A DNA stretch of 62,885 nt, the filler included, from Sluysia triapertura (lineage: Eukaryota), in NCBI GenBank assembly GCA_046118255.1. It is 5 parts of 5 records of this genome, joined end to end, with 100 filler letters (N's around TTAATTAATTAA, not from the genome) between each part and the next. Parts side by side here need not be neighbours in the genome. Positions count along the whole stretch, not along the records: positions 50,937 to 62,885 come from JBJNIA010153715.1; 4 more parts are not named here. One strand, 5' to 3'. Position 1 is the stretch's first letter. Each line of letters begins with the position of its first letter. Position numbers and translations under genes: made by a program. A model generated the notes under the pieces. The model was not told where the DNA came from and did no database searches. It saw only the letters and a list, made by a program, of their open reading frames with translations. Below are positions 50,937 to 62,885 of this stretch, in pieces.

Positions 50937-51489
50937 GAAGTAAAATTGAGCAATTTATTAATATTAATTTTAGTTTTCTTTAAAATGTTTAAGTTTATAT
51001 AATTATTTTTGTTTTGTATTTGGAATTTTATAAATTTTCGGATACAAGCTAAAATATCGAATTGTGAAGATATTTGAAGTTCGCAATTGTTCAGAGAAGT
51101 GTTAAAGATATGAAAAAGTTTTGCAAAATTAAATGAAGATGTTCGTTAATATATCTAAAGACTTAATGTTAAATCAACACAATAACAATTATTCAAGAAA
51201 TAATAATCTATTATTTGTCTCGAACAGACACTACAATTTGTCACTCATCTCCACTTTATCCTTCACTTCTTGATCGTATTGTGACTGTTTACATTAATAC
51301 CTTTTGTAATGTTTTCAAATGTCTTATTATTTTGAATGCTTCATTATTATCAAATCAAATTACAAATATGGATATCTAGTTTTATACAATAAAAATAAAC
51401 TCGACATTAGTATAATTTTGAATGTTTTACTGAAATAATATTTATATACTTTTTTCACATTTCTTCTAAATGTTTGCAAAATGATAAAA

Positions 51490-52047
51490 TTATTTGTAAA
51501 TACAAAAGTCAAACTTTGCTGCACAATCAACATAAGAATTTGTCGAATATTCTTCGAAACAGTTGTTATAAAATCCTCCATAATGATCAATAATAGAACT
51601 TCGAACCAGTTGTAGAAAATTAGGTTCCGATCCTACATAGTAACATAAAGGTTTAAGTTGTAAATTGCAATATCCATCATACATTTTTTTAAATATAACA
51701 GATGCGCAATGCTCTGCATTATCGCTATTATTAGGATCATTAGAATACCAACTATATTCTGTATTGACAACTGAACCATTCACACACATCCAGTTAGATT
51801 TATTACTGTATCTTTCAAACATTAAATCATTTACACCACTCCAAAAATAGTCATTAAATCCAAGTTTATTGAATTGATCTGGACACACCAAAGAACCTTT
51901 ATTTTCAGTACAAAGTCTTTCAGCGTCACAATATTTAACTGTTTGATTGATTATCAAATAGCAAACATTATTCAATAAAGTATACGGACTCGGACAAGCT
52001 TCTACAACTAATAATTTTAGTAGAATTATTAGTATAATAAACAACAT
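51490..52047 (-). CDS. Secreted C-type lectin domain protein (possible C-terminal PAN/apple-like segment)
   Basis: Signal peptide MLFIILIILLKLLVVEA. CTLD: CPSPYTLLNNVCY...AERLC...GSLV...FWSGVND...W...DPNN...EHCA...MYDGYC...PLC. Then CFEEYSTNSYVDCAAK. A 49-nt GT..AG intron after CAAK could extend the CDS to 51360. Confidence 0.88.
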   Translation of the reverse strand: MLFIILIILLKLLVVEACPSPYTLLNNVCYLIINQTVKYCDAERLCTENKGSLVCPDQFNKLGFNDYFWSGVNDLMFERYSNKSNWMCVNGSVVNTEYSWYSNDPNNSDNAEHCASVIFKKMYDGYCNLQLKPLCYYVGSEPNFLQLVRSSIIDHYGGFYNNCFEEYSTNSYVDCAAKFDFCIYK

Positions 52048-52530
52048 AGTATTAATATGAATTTTATTAATTTAATATTTTAAAAATATTATCCTAAATA
52101 TATACTATAAAAACATTGCTGGAAAATAGATACTGTCTGTCATTTTCCCATTTTGATTGTATTTTATAATAACCTCAAACAATCACATTTATTTAATTGT
52201 TCAAATTTTAGACAAAGTTATCACAATATTTAACTGTTTGATTGATTATCAAATAACAAACATTCAATAAAGTATACGTACTCGGACAAGCTTCCACAAC
52301 TAATAATTTTAATAGAATTATTAATATAATAAACGACATAGAATTAATGTGAATTTTATTAATTCAATTCTTTTTAATGTATTTACTTTTAAAATATTAT
52401 CATAAATATATGCTATAAAAATAATGCTGGAAAATAGGTACCGTCTGCCATTTTTCCATGTTTCATTGTATTTTATCATAATTTCAAACAATTACGTTTA
52501 TTTAATTGTTCAAATTTTAGACAAAATTAT
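51927..52530. repeat. ~295-bp tandem duplication of the lectin upstream region and first 40 codons
   Basis: 51927-52221 and 52222-52530 are near-identical. The second copy encodes MSFIILIILLKLLVVEACPSTYTLLNVCYLIINQTVKYCDNFV* (ATG at 52339). Confidence 0.9.
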
Positions 52531-53754
52531 TATAATTAAAAAGAAAATTATGTACCAATGATAAATATATAATTTTATAATTGTCTATATCTCTAACTTA
52601 ACATAACAATTTTTAATATTATCTATCAGGAAATTTTGAGAAATTTTGAAATAAATTTAAATTACAATATCGTCATTTTGAACTACTTTCTCTTTTATTT
52701 TTTAAAAGTTCAATGTTAACAAATATTAATAAGTAATATTTAATAAATAATATTGTTAATTTGTTATAACGTAAATTGTGTTTGTATTTATACAGCAAAA
52801 ATAGGGTATATATAGTTATCTATACATCAACCTATAGATAAGTTAATTAATACAAAAGTAAAGTTTATATTAGAGATATTTCGTCGAAAATTAAACTTTG
52901 ATTTTAATTTCGTGCTTCTAAAATAATTTTTGAAAGATCACGACATGCTTGTTGAAAACCAAATCTATAATATAACATGGTCAACTCAAATTAATTTGAG
53001 TATAAAATTACAGGGCCGGTCAATGTACAAACATATTCGTAGGTTAATAATACAAATTCATATAAACTATATAAATAATGAATTTGCATCTAGATTTAAA
53101 TTCAAAATCTCAATAATCCAAGATTTAAAAAATTTAATGATTAATCGGTGTCAGACTTCCAATATTGAGGTTAATTTTAATATATAATGATTAAGTGGTG
53201 ACAAAACTTTATTTTTATGCGAAGGAGTGGTCCAAGTGTTCTACTTACTATTTTTAGACGAACGTTTCGAGTTGGCAGAAAAGGATTGTTTGGTTATGGA
53301 TTTACTGAATCATAATTTATTGTTATTGTTATTGTTGTCTTGTTTCTGTGTTATAAAAGATTGTTTGTTATTAATTTTATGTTTTTCGTGTAATGTTGAA
53401 GTTGCTTTTTTATTATTGTTAATCGAATAAGTGATGACTTTTGAAATGTTATTGTTGTTTTGAGTAGGTTCAACTTGATTTGATGTGATGTTATGAATAA
53501 GTATTGGATCAAATTTTATTGGATTTTGACATTGTACTTTTGTCATAATTAAAACATATTTTATAATGTTAATTTCTCTAATTAATTTCTTCTTTATGCT
53601 GAGTAGTATCGCTTTTATTTTGAAATTGTGAGTGAGAAGGTGTCATATGTGTAGTTTTACATTGGACGGATGATACTAATATGTTTTAATTTTAATTTAA
53701 CTAAAGATGATTTTAATTTTTGAGGGTTACAGATCATTTTGGCGAATATTTAAT

Positions 53755-54206
53755 CAGGTGCCGACTAAGGCTTAGGCAACCCAAGCAGTGCCTAGGTCCC
53801 GTAATTTTTTGAGCCTGAAAATTAGATTTTTAATTTTTATAATTAATTTTTATTTTATTAACGTGATATTAATAATTATTGTTGAAACGTATCCAAATTG
53901 TGCCGAATCGTTGATTGATAAATAACTCTATTAATTATGACAAACAAGTTGACGAGTTTGCAGAATTAAAGTGAGAAAAAAAGTGATATAACTAATCAAT
54001 CTGGGTATATTTGTTTAAGTATTATTGTTTGTTATGTTTATTTAATTTTTGTACATCAATATTATTTTTTCCTTTTTTTTTCTTGGAACCCTATAATTAA
54101 ACAGAACTACATACTACATGCTTAAAAACCAAACTACCAAACGCAAGGTATGTGTCACAACTAAACAATAGGCCCGGAATTACAATGCAGCCTTACTCAG
54201 TCACTG
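53755..54206 (+). mobile_element. Non-autonomous hAT element (452 bp) with 8-bp TSD
   Basis: Identical TATTTAAT flanks (53747-53754, 54207-54214). Imperfect TIRs CAGGTGCCGACTAAGGC and, reverse-complemented, CAGTGACTGAGTAAGGC. Residual transposase C-terminus INYDKQVDEFAELK*. Confidence 0.85.
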
Positions 54207-54832
54207 TATTTAATACAGAAGAAGCGTTTTGTAGATTGAGTTGATACTGTATTTATTGGTTGATTCTTTGTGATATATTATTTACATTCGTTAAATATTA
54301 CGCATTTAAAGAGGTATTCGGTGTAATGAAGATATTTACAAATATTTTGCGCTATTTAAATGATCTTCTAGTGATTTGTTCACATTTAATTTTATTTATT
54401 TTATTGTTTCTTACGAATTATTAAATATTTTTAATTTGAAATTTTTATTTTTTGCTTATAAAAGAATGACAGCAATTATTGGTCCAAAATTAATCTAACA
54501 ATATCATTCATTTATTGGTGGGCTCGTATTTATTAATGATCATCTTTAACTTAATTATATCGTTAAAGTAAAATTGTTCGTGTAGAATATTTCATATATT
54601 TTTCTATCTTCTTTCGTATTCACAAATATTCTTTTTAACTATGCCTTTATTTGAATATTTATTTTTCTCGTCTTTTATTCATAAATCTGAAAAATTACAC
54701 TCTGGGTTGCTTAAAGTCAGATACTTACGATTCCTAGTCGGTTGTTGCATAGGATTTTTGTTGCTTATTTAAAGATCATTGAATAAAGGGTCACTTTCTC
54801 GTTATCTCTGTTTAGGTTATTTTGATCTTATT

Positions 54833-54884
<52 letters not shown>

Positions 54885-54886
<2 letters not shown>

Positions 54887-55893
54887 TGAGAACTGTTAAT
54901 AGCAGAACTGTTAACTCTAACTGCACTATGATTATCAAATGAAACCTGATTGAAAATTATATTTTAATGATAATTTTATTATTTATTTATTTTGGTTATT
55001 GTTCAATATTTATAATTTATTTTATTGTTCAAATGTAAAATATTATTTAAAATATTTATCATTATTATAAAGAATTAAAACTAATAGATTTTGTTATACA
55101 AAAAATTAAAATTTTATTTTTAATTAAAATTTAATTTTAATATATTTTGTTTTACCAAAACAAAATAATTTATTTTGTTTTAATTAGTGAAAATTTAAAT
55201 TTGTAAACACAACATGGCCGATGAAAAATTCTATATAAAAGTCACTGACTTTTTCGGAATTTTTCAATAGCCAGTTGGTAAAAAATTTATTAAACTTCGA
55301 AAAAGAAAACTATGTCCATGAAAGTAAGTTTATATTTGTTAAGTTTTTAAAACTTCTCACCGTAAGAAGGGAGAAGCAAAATCTCACTTAAACTTATTTT
55401 TCGATTTGCTTATACCGTAATACGGATAAGTTAAAATCTGTTTAAAATAAACTAACTAAATTCCTAGAATTTAAGTTAATAAACTTATTATTCATATTAT
55501 ACATTGAGTGTTTTGTTATTTCTCTTTTGTCTTTGTGGTGAATAAAACTTTTTCACTAAAGTTGTTTTGTATTATTACTAAGTATTAATATCATTGTCGA
55601 ACGCTAGACCGTAATAAGGCTAGCTTAATATTATAAAATCACATTTAAAGTTTTCAATAATTAGACCGTAACCGGCTAATTTAATATTTTATTGTTAACA
55701 AGTTAGACCGTAAAAAGGCTAACTAAAAATCATTTAAATTTATTATAATTAAAACATTTGAATAAGCTAAAAATCTTCGTAGGTACTCCTTATTGTGACG
55801 TTTATTTATTCAATTTTTCTCTGTAAATCCTAACAGGCAGCCGTCGTTCTGACTTAAGTCATTTTCTGTTAGGCGAACTCTCTCCAGGTCACA
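54885..55893 (+). mobile_element. LTR-like element (family C, ~1 kb) with TATA box and hairpin array
   Basis: TGTGA...TCACA inverted termini, TATATAAAA at 55232-55240, initiator-like CCAGTT at 55271, AATAAA at 55541. No matching TSD (left flank is an AAT microsatellite). Confidence 0.45.
55353..55724 (+). other. Array of five structurally conserved hairpins (stem / bulged A / CC-GTAA(N2-3)-GG / stem)
   Basis: 55353-55376 CTTCTC-A-CC-GTAAGAA-GG-GAGAAG; 55408-55431 GCTTAT-A-CC-GTAATAC-GG-ATAAGT; 55603-55624 GCTAG-A-CC-GTAATAA-GG-CTAGC; 55659-55681 AATTAG-A-CC-GTAACC-GG-CTAATT; 55701-55724 AGTTAG-A-CC-GTAAAAA-GG-CTAACT. Confidence 0.85.
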
Positions 55894-57373
55894 TTTGCAT
55901 CGAAGTTAGGTGAAAACTCATCTTTGCAGACTATTAATAATAATATTATTGACTATCGACTTTATTCGACTATTAGAAAAGATTTATCGTTGTAATAAAA
56001 TATTGTCGAAAATTTCTATTATTAATTTTATATTTGATAATTATAATTTTTTCAGTATTTTAATATAATATCCCAACAGCAGTACTTTAGCAAAAGTTCA
56101 TTAAAAGATGCCAGAATTAGAAATGTTATTGAAAATGTAAGTTGATGTTAATCAATCAAACAAATCAAGTTTATTCTGCAAACCATCTACATCAACAGAT
56201 ACATTAAATATTTTTCAATCTTGTACAGTACGATACACTAAAAGAAAAATGAAAACCAACTGTAGAATAGGAGTATACAAATATATTAGTCATCTCAGCA
56301 GAATTTTCTACAAAAACATGAATCACCCAAAGTAGTCTCGAGTTACGATCAAAGAAAGTGAAATAAATAGATCAAAATAACAAATGCAAAGTATTACCTG
56401 AAATAGGAAAATAGGATTCTGAATCTAGAAAAGTGCAGCAATTACAAAACAATTAGATTCCTTACAACAAAAGTAACAGTTCGGTGTTGATTCCTTTCAA
56501 TCTTTCGGAAAATGTAGCTCAGTCATTATTTCAAGGCTAAAGGATTATTTGATATGGTTCAGAGAACTATTGAAATAAATACGTATTTTTGATGCAAGTG
56601 GATTCAAACCAAAATAAAAGTGAAGATTGTAACTTTACTTATCTAATAAAACCACATCTATTTATAAAAGTCTATTAAATCTTATAATTTGTGAACTTCA
56701 TTATCGTTTTCTGGTGGCTCATTTAAGCAAAACTTTTTCGTTTTAAATTCGTGCTCATCGTGAAATTTTCTAATTATATGAATTAACATGTAAACAGTTT
56801 CTTCGAAGATCTTCGTATACGCAAAAAGCATATCTTGTTTAATTTGTACATCACTATTATTAAAGGGAGTATCAAGCAATGATTTCTTTACTTTATTTTC
56901 TGACAAAGCTTGTGAATTCAGATCAATTTTATTTACAGATAAAATAAAAAGAAAATTCACTGGATTTATCGAATTCGTTTGTAATGAAAAGTATCATTAT
57001 GACTCAGTAAAACGAATTTTAACCTTGACCTCTTAGAAGCCATAACAATTACAAAAACTGATAGAAATTAAAAAAAAATTAAAGTCTTTACGTTTCAAAT
57101 TAATTTGTGAGTACTACTAAAGAACATTACGTTCTGAAGTGTGCTTTGATTGGTTGTCCAACCAGAGATATATAAAAATAATGCAGAAATCATTCTGGTT
57201 GGACAACCAGTAATAAAGCCATACAAAATTGCTTGAGAAAGAAACCGCTATCAGTGGAGACAGTGATTGAAAATATAGTTTAATGAAGTCACCACTCATA
57301 GTGGTAGTTACTAAATTAAGAGGTTTGATACTGAACTTAATTGGAAATAAAAATGGTAAAAATTAAAAATGGT

Positions 57374-57407
<34 letters not shown>

Positions 57408-57543
57408 TTATTATTATTATTACTATCTTAAAACATAAATTTATTTATTTTATCTGAAACATGAACTTGCTTTTTGAATCTTTATTTTTTCAACATATTA
57501 AACTTATAAAACAGGCGAGCCTTAAAGAATTGTGAGTTTGAAA

Positions 57544-58475
57544 TGTTACGGCCGAATATTATGCAATTTGGGCAAGGTTTTGACATGTAATAGTGATGTT
57601 AATGTTTTAAGGAAATGCGTAAAGTGTTTTAATATAAATTTAACTGTTGTTTTGTGGTTTTAAATGAAGATAAATTTAGGTTTAGGTATTTTGAAGTAAT
57701 ATAAATGTTTTATGTGGACATTAAAATACACCTTGTTTTTTGAAATGAAATAATGTTTTTGGCTAAAGATGAACTTGAGCATTAAAAGGTAATGATTTAA
57801 ATATCTTGAAATAATATAAATATTTAAAATGGATTATAAATTTACATTGGTTTTTGTATGAAAGTAATGTTTAGCTATTTGGAGGTGTGACTTAAAATGC
57901 TTTGGAAAAAAATAGTTTAGTGAATGAAAAGAAGAAAAGTTGTAGTCTAGCTTTTATTATGTTCAAAATGTGATTGTGCTGTGTTGCAAATATGATTTAT
58001 TATCTTGCTACATTTAAGTGAACTTATTTTTTTGCAAGGTTAGAGATTAATTGAAAACAGATCATGAATTTAGAGTATCTGAATTGATTTGAAGGTTTCT
58101 GGTAGTTGATTTCGAATGTAGTTGTGGTTGGATTGTTATGAGGTGTCGAATAAAATATTTCTGATTAATCACTTAATGTAAATTGATGGTATTGTATGTT
58201 ATGAGATTGTATATTTGAAGTGTTTTGAAAAGTGGGAGTTTATTTTGGTGGATCTGAAAAGAAATAAGATATAAAACGGTTGTGACGAATTTTACAAGGT
58301 TGATGTGTGGTGTTAAAAGAATATGATTTTAGTTATATTGAATTAGAATTATATAAAAAAAGTTTTAAATAAATTTTAAAGTGTATATTGTAGATTTTGA
58401 AAGTTTATGTGGTTTTAAAATGTTTAAAATAGAATGTTTAATAAAATTTGTTAAAATTAATGGGTTGGCCACCAC

Positions 58476-58476
<1 letters not shown>
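57544..58476 (-). repeat. Repeat family A copy (left boundary uncertain)
   Basis: Minus-strand start TGTGGTGGCCAACCC at 58476; shares TTTTGGTGGATCTGAAAAGAAAT with other copies; G/T skew on + strand. Confidence 0.55.

Positions 58477-58551
<75 letters not shown>
58477..58551. repeat. (AAT)n microsatellite
   Basis: Pure run; source of the poly-Ile ORFs 58365..58562 and 58381..58602. Similar runs at ~1502-1550, 39321-39366, 54836-54884 and ~57375-57406. Confidence 0.95.
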
Positions 58552-58555
<4 letters not shown>

Positions 58556-61500
58556 CTAACATATTTAATAATTTAATATTTAATTTAATAATTTTAAATT
58601 AAATATATAATACACATTATAATTTGAAAATTAATTTAAAATGATTTGCATAAAAGCATTTTACTAATATTTGAATTATCAGATGATTAATTTCACTTAT
58701 CGAATAATAACGTTATACAGTTAGTTGCATTAAAAATCAATTATAAAAGCCCATTTCCGTTAACGCTAAAAATTGAACAAAACTTTGAGTATTATTTTAT
58801 CTAACACATTTCGTTTAATAATTAATGAAATTATTATTTAATAAATTAAATGTTTTTAATTATTTTTTTAAAATAATTTTACTATAATTTATTTGTTAAA
58901 TTTTTATAACAAATTTATGGTTTTAAACAAAAATTTATAATGAAATTATGGAAGTATTATGCAAGTATAAGAGACGACGTCACTAAATCAATAAATAATA
59001 TAATAATAACTAATATCTCTTATTTATTTATAAAATCGAAAATGTCAATGAATTTAAAGTATGCTTCAATAATTATAAGTAGTAATGAAATGATGATAAA
59101 ATAAATAACTAAATAGTAAATACTTTACACTAAAATAATGATAATGGTTAAAATATAAAAAGAAAATAATATATAAAAATAATCTTTTTTTCATTGATCT
59201 AGAAATAATTTATTGTTAAATGTCAATAAGAGAAAAGTAATGCTGACTTTTATTTCAATAGCTTTTATCTTTTTTGTAATACTTTAGTTTTGTAGTTTGC
59301 ATATAAAATAAACAAAGATGTATGTTTAAAGTTGATGTTAAACATGTTTTATATATAAATGTAATTTTTTGTAATAATTAATATAAAACCTAATAAAAGT
59401 ACATTTTTGATTATATTTTATTGAATATTGAAATTTCGGTTTGATTAAACGTTAGAAAGTGTAATTTTTGTTATCAGAAAACAATAATATTTACAGCGAC
59501 GAAGTTGAAGAGTTCTTAGGTGATACCTTCTATGCACTTTCATTTTAAATTAATTATTTCAAATAATTCTTAATTACTAATATTTTTATTGTTGTTAACT
59601 TACTTTATTTTCCACTGATAGCATCTTCAGTGAGCAAATTTCCATTTCTTAAATTTGTTTATTACTTAGAACATCAACAAATTATGCATAAAAGCAAAAC
59701 ATTCAGTGCGGTTATCGAAACAGCAATAGCTTAGAGATATGCAGAATACATAAGTTTGTTTAGTTGATTTAATAAATGAAGTGAAAATAATTTTATGTAC
59801 TATCAAAATCATAAGTTTCAAATCAGCAATTCAAGGGCTGAACCACGAAATTCTTGAAGTGTGCCACCACTACCACCTATACATAAACGACAGCAGAAAA
59901 GTAAAAAAGGTCGTCGTTCCAGACATTCGTCTCGTGTATAATAATAATACACAAACATTTATTCGTCAATCCTAAGAGAAATCAAATGTTTCTGAATCTT
60001 CAAATCACAAATTAGCTGAAAGTAGTGTTGATAAATAATTTAATTGTATAAACTATCTTAAACTGTTTTAATGTATACTTTTGAAAAACTAATTTAACAG
60101 TGTTAAAGAAAATGTTTTAAATGCTTACTAAAACTTGCATAATTTAGCGCATCATAATTCATGAAACATTGTTTGCTAAAACTTGAAACACATTATCCAA
60201 AGATAAAAATGATATTCAACTAATTTATGAGAATTATAATTAATAAGGCTTACTACGTTTATTACACCTTTTAATTTTAGTTTAAAATATTGATTAAAAC
60301 AGCACAGAAACACTCGAGGGTGATTACGAAATGAAAATTTTATGAACTTGAAGTGAATCATAAAATCAAAGTAACATTAGATTTTCTTTTAACTATTAAG
60401 ATTAATCGATGGTATTTAAGATGCTAAGTAAAATATACATGGACCTAATGTTCTTATCAAAATAAAAATCGATTTCAATCGTCCTGAAAATGGCATTAGT
60501 TTTTATGACAATAATTTTTAAGTTCATGATTTGAAAACTCATTTCGTAAATTAGAATTCACATTGAAATTGTACAAGTAACGCATGGTTTGAAATTATTT
60601 AAATTATTTTTAAGCAATATATTTAGAAATTCAACAAAATTACAAAACGATTAAACTTTAAATTAGATTTTAAAATACTTAATATTATTTAATTTATGAC
60701 TTACTAAATTTAGAAAGTTAATTACCAATAATTTACCTTTTGAATATTTAACTAATGAGTAAACAAAAAATTGCAAAACACAATTCCATTTAAAACAATT
60801 AACTCATAAAGATAACAATTGAAATCAATTAAACTAAATTCACTTTGCCATTTTTACATTTTAATTTTCTTCAATTTTGATAGACTTTGACTAAGCAAAA
60901 TAATAAAAACAAGTTAAGCCTTCATAAAACTAATTAATATTTTCAATTTAGTCAATGACATTGAAAGTATAAGCACACATGCATATATGTATATCAACAT
61001 ACATACATCCATTTATTGTACAATGACTAATCATGAAGATGATAATTATCACTATTATCATTATGAAGTAATAGAAATGAGAAAATTGTCACTGTTAATA
61101 TATCTTACAATACATTATTTATTTATTCTGGTAATCTGCACAATTACTGGTAATACTTTAATAATACAGCTAATAATTATGATAGATCCATTAATTTTTT
61201 ATCCTTACGTAAATCAATGGCTATCTTGATGAATTTTAATTAAAAATCAATACATACACCAGAGTAATAAAGTCTTACAATTATAATTTGACACTTAACT
61301 ATTTTCTTTTTTATACTATGACTTAAGTGGTTATTATTTTATTATTACACTATGAGATTTCACAAACTGTAAAACAATGGAGATCTTTATTACGAAAATC
61401 TTATATAAATTTAATTTAACAACCATAAGCGTTACTACTAAAAACTTAGTAAACCAAATTACATAACCCTGTTTAATTCAGATTAATTTATTATTTAACA

Positions 61501-62885
61501 TTATTTATTCTATCTTGTTTAGAGTTCGATTCAAATATATTCGGGATGCAGATATAATAATGAATAATTATAAATTCATTCCTTAAAAAATGTAAAAAAT
61601 TGTAAAAATAAATAGACATTAATTATTAGCATTAATATGTTTCAATTGAGTAATCTAAATATTCTTAGTTACCTCATCATTAGTTACTACTTACACTAAT
61701 GCTATTAAAATTTTCCAATGAACGATTCATTCTGATCCATGTACTTTCTTCAGGCTTTGATTAAAATTTCAAAACCTTCAGACCGAAAACCATATGATTT
61801 ATTTCCTTTTAGATGTGTCTAAATGAGAGAAGATATGGAAAGTGAAAACACCCAGATTATTCACTGAGTAATATATATGAATTTATTGTTTAGTATATAT
61901 ACTTTTTTCTTGGATTTCTAAGCACACTTTATCTTTATTTTTGTATCATTTTCTACAGAGTGTATATAATTCCAGAGAATGATTAATATCACAACTTTTC
62001 GTGGATTTTATACACACATATATCACAATCATAAACACATTTCATCCCAAATTAACACTTCATACATAAATAAATTACTAAACAGATTACTCAATTCAAA
62101 CAAAACATATACACAGTCGTAATAATTTATACATACTATAATTTTATAATTGTTATCTTAATAACTATTGTCATAATAATACTAAATTGTTGATTTTGTG
62201 ATTGTTGCTGTTGCTGTTACAATTATTTTAACTTATTGTTTCCTTTTTGTATGTATGTACACATGTTTATCTTTATGTAATTAATTTTTTATTATTCTTC
62301 GCATCTTATCATTATTATCCTTGTTTATACATATTTCATTACATTGCCCAAAATTGTTTAACATAAAGATATCTAATTTACAGATTACAGATTTTCAATT
62401 TTTTCTTTTAATATATGAAAATGAAATATTATTAAATTATTATTAAAACTTTATTAAAATTTATATTATTTACATCTATTATTATTTTTGTTTATTATTA
62501 CAGTATTTTGAAAAATATATTAATAATTCATTAACTATAAAAAAATCAATAATAAACTAGCTTTAGACATTTCTTAATGACTATTGCTAAAAATATAATG
62601 AGTTTTGACGAGAACATACCTTATGATGGTTTCTTTCATTTTAAAAATTATTAACTATGGGTGAAAATGTTGATTTATACGTTTTGCGGTTACGAGTTGA
62701 ACACCATTTTATGGGGGAAAAAGTTAGTTTATATGGTTTGTTGTTATGAGTTAGACACCATAATATGGTATAAGATAGACTCGAGGGCGTTAAATTAGAC
62801 AATGTAAGAAGGTAATAGTTGATTTTAAACTTTGAAAACTTACATTCATTTTTATTGTTCGTATGTAATAATATTTTATGAACGA

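Follow-up and report, generated by a model that had tools for sequence, protein, structure and literature searches.

The locus and its surroundings

The hairpins described in this study were identified in the genome of Sluysia triapertura (GCA_046118255.1), within a window of 62,885 nucleotides that comprises the whole stretch of DNA analysed and that consists of five parts joined end to end. They reside in the last of these parts, a piece covering positions 50937-62885 (JBJNIA010153715.1) with a GC content of 19–30%, where reading frames are nearly absent whichever genetic code is applied and where attempts to rescue open reading frames with the ciliate code or other codes gave no signal. The one convincing gene of this piece, located on the minus strand at 51490-52047, encodes a secreted C-type lectin of 185 residues (Pfam Lectin_C, E=1.3e-5), whose relatives among 1.8 billion representatives are exclusively distant animal proteins with a sequence identity of at most 34% (crinoid, krill, coral), which identifies the DNA as that of an animal. 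The 5' end of the gene and its promoter region are tandemly duplicated at 51926-52536 of the window, in units of about 295–309 bp sharing 86–98% identity. No protein relatives were found for the remaining open reading frames of the piece, no tRNA genes were detected within it and its letters carry no soft-masking that would flag repeats.

Other features of the piece are found on both sides of the array. On the plus strand, a GC-richer island at 53757-53840 contains a 10-bp hairpin (53769-53798) followed by the sequence CCCGTAA, a run resembling an Sm site (A-U6-GAG) and an AT stem-loop, in a layout that recalls the gene of a small nuclear or spliced-leader RNA and that matches no Rfam family. 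A near-perfect 17-bp inverted repeat at 57139-57227, which forms a long hairpin and is scored by the mir-582 model at 32.9 bits against a threshold of 84, may represent a foldback of miRNA-like or MITE-like type, and a stretch of 1 kb at 57437-58436, with a strong GC skew of +0.48 to +0.64 and no open reading frame, may constitute a degenerate repeat.

Five hairpins with invariant caps and covarying stems

The array extends over about 370 nt of non-coding and very AT-rich sequence (55353-55724) and contains five hairpins on the plus strand. All of them (n=5) are built in the same way: a lower stem of 5–6 bp is followed by a bulged A in its 5' strand and by two C:G pairs, which close a 6–7-nt loop that starts with GTAA. 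They are listed here together with their scores from the covariance model described below:

Hairpin 1, 55353-55376, plus strand: 6-bp lower stem, bulged A at 55359, CC/GG, 7-nt loop; 36.3 bits
Hairpin 2, 55408-55431, plus strand: 6-bp lower stem, bulged A at 55414, CC/GG; 35.8 bits
Hairpin 3, 55603-55624, plus strand: 5-bp lower stem, bulged A at 55608, CC/GG, 7-nt loop; 38 bits
Hairpin 4, 55659-55681, plus strand: 6-bp lower stem, bulged A at 55665, CC/GG, 6-nt loop (one more pair possible); 32.7 bits
Hairpin 5, 55701-55724, plus strand: 6-bp lower stem, bulged A at 55707, CC/GG, 7-nt loop; 38 bits

The spacers between successive hairpins measure 31, 171, 34 and 19 nt. Their common motif ACCGTAA(N2-3)GG starts on the plus strand at positions 55359, 55414, 55608, 55665 and 55707, and is expected 0.82 times across the whole window, with none of 100 shuffles reaching five occurrences. 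The heptamer ACCGTAA itself is found in five copies, all on the plus strand (55359-55713), and nowhere else on either strand of the window. An earlier note on this DNA had reported five such copies that are absent elsewhere and closed by stems of 5–6 bp, and both statements were confirmed in our scan of the two strands, where each of the five copies is enclosed by 5–6 complementary bases.

The bare shape, in which five lower pairs are followed by a bulge, two further pairs and a 5–8-nt loop, was encountered 136 times on the plus strand of the piece, compared to about 106 occurrences expected in simulated sequence. Since this shape is common in AT-rich DNA, the signal resides in the combination of a shared cap with pairing and not in the shape alone. 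For a random 12-nt core in the piece, the probability to be flanked by at least five contiguous pairs is P=0.0135, which for five out of five cores amounts to about 4.5e-10, and a chance origin of the five paired cores is excluded.

The constraints acting on the hairpins are observed directly in their alignment, where 39 out of 40 stem cells contain standard pairs and where six of the eight stem pairs have changed on both sides. The covariation score of this alignment was not reached in any of 500 shuffles and, in a control where the partner was slid by 1–3 columns, pairing was retained in only 20–55%. When pair states are counted for each column, the five copies require no fewer than ten compensated changes that are independent of each other. 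Together, the pairing, the double changes and the shuffles bear out the proposal of the earlier note that the compensatory variation reflects a constraint on pairing instead of being the residue of a simple tandem duplication. The cap behaves differently, with nine invariant positions (the bulged A, CC, GTAA and GG), whereas none of the 12 columns of the lower stem is invariant (Fisher p=3.4e-6). The cap is thus constrained by its sequence and the stem by its pairing.

A covariance model made from the five 28-nt hairpins and run with filters turned off across the piece, as previously suggested, detects these five alone at 33–38 bits, followed by a next match at 13 bits. Although copies without the cap would have escaped notice in the initial identification, the model search sees nothing between 13 and 33 bits, which argues against decayed copies nearby.

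The relationship between the copies extends beyond the hairpins into the sequence on the 3' side of their stems. The hexamer AAAATC follows the stem after a single base in hairpins 1, 2 and 5, and it is found after a 10-nt insert in hairpin 3:

AAAATC of unit 1, 55378-55383, plus strand: followed by TTAAA
AAAATC of unit 2, 55433-55438, plus strand: followed by TTTAAA
AAAATC of unit 3, 55635-55640, plus strand: shifted by the 10-nt insert; followed by TTTAAA
AAAATC of unit 5, 55726-55731, plus strand: followed by TTTAAA

In each of the four units bearing the hexamer, which occurs 15 times on the plus strand in 11.9 kb, TTTAAA or TTAAA is located within 1–4 bases past it, and hairpins 3 and 4 share the sequence TTAATATT on the 3' side of the stem. 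The previous description of the spacers as unrelated has therefore to be abandoned, and the common flank blocks identify the array as the product of duplication of a 42–57-nt unit, whose copies have since diverged. These units are old, since their divergence is such that Tandem Repeats Finder does not call a tandem repeat over 55353-55724. A simple tandem repeat or minisatellite, with head-to-tail units that are at least about 70% alike, was rejected on the same ground and because the likeness between units is confined to the cap and the short flank blocks. The fact that the hexamer survived while every position of the stem turned over suggests that AAAATC is part of the functional unit.

When folded singly, the hairpins adopt the described structure with energies of -7.0 to -10.1 kcal/mol and z-scores between -2.5 and -4.3. 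All five are also retained in the minimum free energy fold of 55270-55900 (631 nt of context), the region whose folding had been proposed in the earlier note, with mean pair probabilities of 0.77–0.99, and the structure of the 171-nt spacer and the 3' flank is ordinary (z about +0.3). Folding quality is equal for the plus and the minus strand. The sole wobble of the array is found in hairpin 2, whose loop could close two more pairs and whose outermost pair is G-T, which is a G-U wobble if the plus strand is read and an A-C mismatch if the minus strand is read. The sense of this wobble and the location of a candidate promoter on the plus strand together confer a mild preference for plus-strand RNA, and the molecule concerned is most likely an RNA read from this strand.

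Upstream sequence and alternative origins of the array

The region upstream of the hairpins contains two short features on the same strand:

Candidate core promoter, 55232-55276, plus strand: TATATAAAA at 55232-55240 and an initiator-like CCAGTT at 55271-55276
12-codon open reading frame, 55312-55350, plus strand: contains GTAAGT at 55324-55329 and stops 2 nt short of hairpin 1

The assignment of a TATA box and initiator, which was already part of the earlier note, is a tentative one. The two strands of the piece, with DNA of 24% GC, contain 58 copies of TATAAA, and its presence carries little weight for this reason. The combination of a TATA sequence with YCAGTY 31–37 nt downstream is unique in the piece, where it is found at 55234 and places the putative promoter 80 nt upstream of the array, but this pairing was sought post hoc. 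At 55145-55182 of the window, 70–90 nt upstream of the TATA box, lies a 9-bp palindrome that is perfect, has ACC as its loop and precedes a direct copy of one of its arms. The suggestion that the loops sequester a 5' splice site does not agree with their sequence, as GTAAG is present in hairpin 1 only and as positions -1 and -2 are occupied by C in all five cases. A MITE or other element with terminal inverted repeats was likewise rejected, with the best inverted repeat bracketing promoter and array (21 out of 25 positions) being matched in 11 of 40 simulations.

The array had previously been placed into an LTR element, in whose R-U5 or leader RNA the hairpins would act in packaging, export or transactivation, a scenario that is a special case of an RNA platform. 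The segment in question is bounded by TGTGA (54886-54890) and TCACA (55889-55893), which provide TG...CA ends with short inverted termini at a distance of about 1 kb, and both the TATA sequence with its initiator upstream of the array and the GTAAGT between candidate promoter and array, in a position as expected for a leader splice donor, would fit such an arrangement. However, 5-mers of this kind are, like TATA boxes, frequent at this composition and the terminal ones are the only part of the LTR frame that fits. The sequences adjoining the two ends, (TAA)n before 54886 and TTTGC after 55893, display no match of 4–6 bp that would qualify as target-site duplication, there is no TGG-type primer-binding site in the first bases past 55893, and a (TAA)17 microsatellite is found before 54886 in place of a polypurine tract. 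Within the 12-kb piece, the check for paired LTRs revealed neither a second copy nor a long direct repeat of 54886-55893, which has 3.9 kb of the piece on its left side and 7 kb on its right, and none of 15 open reading frames carries a retroelement Pfam domain, including gag and pol. An AATAAA about 50 nt before the (TAA)17 run gives the region 54783-54885 the appearance of a retroposed 3'-end tail to the left of the supposed LTR start, and if this is what it is, TGTGA would be mere flank. While a solo LTR is possible, we regard a leader signal of a retroelement as very unlikely.

The conserved features might alternatively be read in DNA. As single strands exposed during replication, the hairpins could be recognized by a strand-specific nuclease, a transposase or an HUH-type replication initiator, enzymes for which the recognition of a stem by its structure and not its sequence is usual. 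When DNA folding parameters are applied, the hairpins still form (at -3.9 to -5.6 kcal/mol and with z-scores as low as -4.75), neither strand is excluded by folding and, on the minus strand, every loop ends with TTAC, which recalls the nick sites of HUH initiators and which we consider as a lead only. Conversely, their stability as single-stranded DNA is about half of the RNA value, no open reading frame resembling a Rep protein, transposase or recombinase is contained in the 12 kb, five irregularly spaced sites in the same orientation correspond to no known origin or transposon end, and the inverted repeat around the array is of the quality obtained by simulation as described above, all of which make this explanation highly improbable. 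In double-stranded form, the array could consist of binding sites for a transcription factor or insulator protein, as found in the leaders of some insect retroelements, with the cap serving as protein site. An invariant 9-base core repeated five times in one orientation between AT-rich spacers, and a second conserved block, AAAATC, at fixed offset would both be expected in this case, yet it leaves the co-changing arms at six positions unexplained and the arms do not form a fixed half-site. We thus consider duplex sites as quite improbable, too.

The remaining explanation dispenses with function and views the array as the product of a local duplication that has decayed, with short palindromes kept perfect by template switching during replication. 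This process is able to generate hairpins and to maintain them, and in the absence of selection it can imitate compensatory change (PMC8794818). Like our hairpins, the resulting quasipalindromes consist of short inverted repeats that are perfect and seem to have changed in a compensatory manner. In line with such an origin, the units have been shown to be duplicates and chance hairpins abound in AT-rich DNA. In contrast, an invariant asymmetric cap with a bulge, as present in the array, is not expected from this mechanism, which also does not account for the persistence of this non-palindromic element next to fully diverged arms, nor for the perfection of all five units and of no other sequence nearby. 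An array devoid of function is for these reasons rather unlikely.

A putative multivalent dock and its relation to known systems

Our preferred explanation for the array, to which we assign, based on evidence from a single locus, a probability of about 0.4, is that of a multivalent RNA platform serving a cap-reading protein. According to this proposal, the five diverged duplicates would each present the same apical module, consisting of the bulged A, the two C:G pairs and a loop that begins with GUAA, while the sequence of the stem would be free to drift as long as pairing is kept. Four of the five units would in addition carry a single-stranded AAAAUC tail. A single protein or oligomer might then recognize the cap by its sequence and the stem by its shape, and the presence of five sites within 370 nt would provide avidity or nucleate an assembly on the transcript. 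Whereas the hairpins, their covariation and the contrast between cap and stems are observed, the identity of the molecule as RNA, its strand, a protein as reader and any downstream role, which may concern localisation, stability, the formation of a scaffold or packaging, are inferred. If transcribed and conserved, the array would constitute a multivalent hairpin tag of natural origin in an animal, following the rule of a fixed cap, a free stem and a fixed tail. If true, this rule would allow the reader protein to be found directly and might establish a new family of RNAs. Should the element turn out to be a repeat family, its annotation could rely on the rule as a structure-based signature. 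Already at this stage, the locus offers a clear case of compensated change within a single locus, in which a constraint on the sequence of the cap can be separated from a constraint on the pairing of the stem.

Our searches for relatives have not revealed a known family. In Rfam 15, the best scores for 55200-55900 at E-values up to 10 were 13–18 bits compared to thresholds of 40–94 and concerned exclusively bacterial sRNAs, and a search across the whole piece detected no family near the array. Among 2.9 million viral contigs, no related array was found; 96 and 35 single pattern matches are consistent with chance and the 35 two-motif matches, when rescored with the covariance model, reached at most 20 bits. 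A specific two-hairpin pattern gave no match in a metagenome collection, where a looser pattern retrieved five chance matches, on contigs of 43–49% GC and lacking complementary arms. Pattern searches of prokaryote genomes returned no match, and a search for the motif in the full-text literature found nothing relevant. The 3' end of a Helitron, DNA sites for Myb, bZIP or ETS proteins and a CRISPR- or REP-like array were rejected due to a misfit in core positions or spacing, and no tRNA-like identity was detected.

In its general organization, the array resembles several RNAs that engage proteins by repeated hairpins. The 3' UTR of the transferrin-receptor mRNA contains five iron-responsive elements, which share with the array the occurrence of several hairpins in one RNA, covarying stems, a loop of invariant sequence for one protein and a single bulged base in the 5' strand. 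However, the bulge of the iron-responsive element is a C, with an upper stem of five pairs separating it from a loop of six bases that differs in sequence, whereas it is an A two pairs below the loop in the array. The Rfam models of the element do not match the array at E-values up to 10, and no iron-related gene is found nearby. RNAs of the CsrB/RsmZ type similarly display one loop motif on many hairpins of a single RNA. These RNAs are bacterial and titrate one protein, and their loops contain GGA and follow no bulge rule.

The coat-protein operators of RNA phages carry a bulged A in the 5' strand, two pairs below the loop, as do all five copies of the array, and likewise have a lower stem of free sequence. 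Together with dispersed packaging signals, they illustrate that multiple weak copies can act together. The likeness to the MS2 operator drawn in the earlier note is thus real with respect to the position of the bulge, but it does not extend to the loop, which comprises 6–7 nt instead of the 4 nt of the operator. The context of the array is moreover animal-like and non-coding, with no phage or coat gene. Finally, the roX boxes and the A-repeat of Xist act as protein docks on non-coding transcripts of Pol II, and they parallel the array in their short conserved hairpin modules and their uneven AT- or U-rich spacers. Their motifs are unlike those of the array, which has no Rfam match. By motif and geometry, the array belongs to none of the classes of iron-responsive elements, phage operators or lncRNA stem-loops. 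It might instead, as we tentatively propose, represent an undescribed class of animal cis-RNA, defined by GUAA-loop hairpins with a bulged A, a CC:GG cap and an AAAAUC tail, which would serve as a putative multivalent dock for a cap-reading protein on a non-coding transcript or on the leader of a mobile element.
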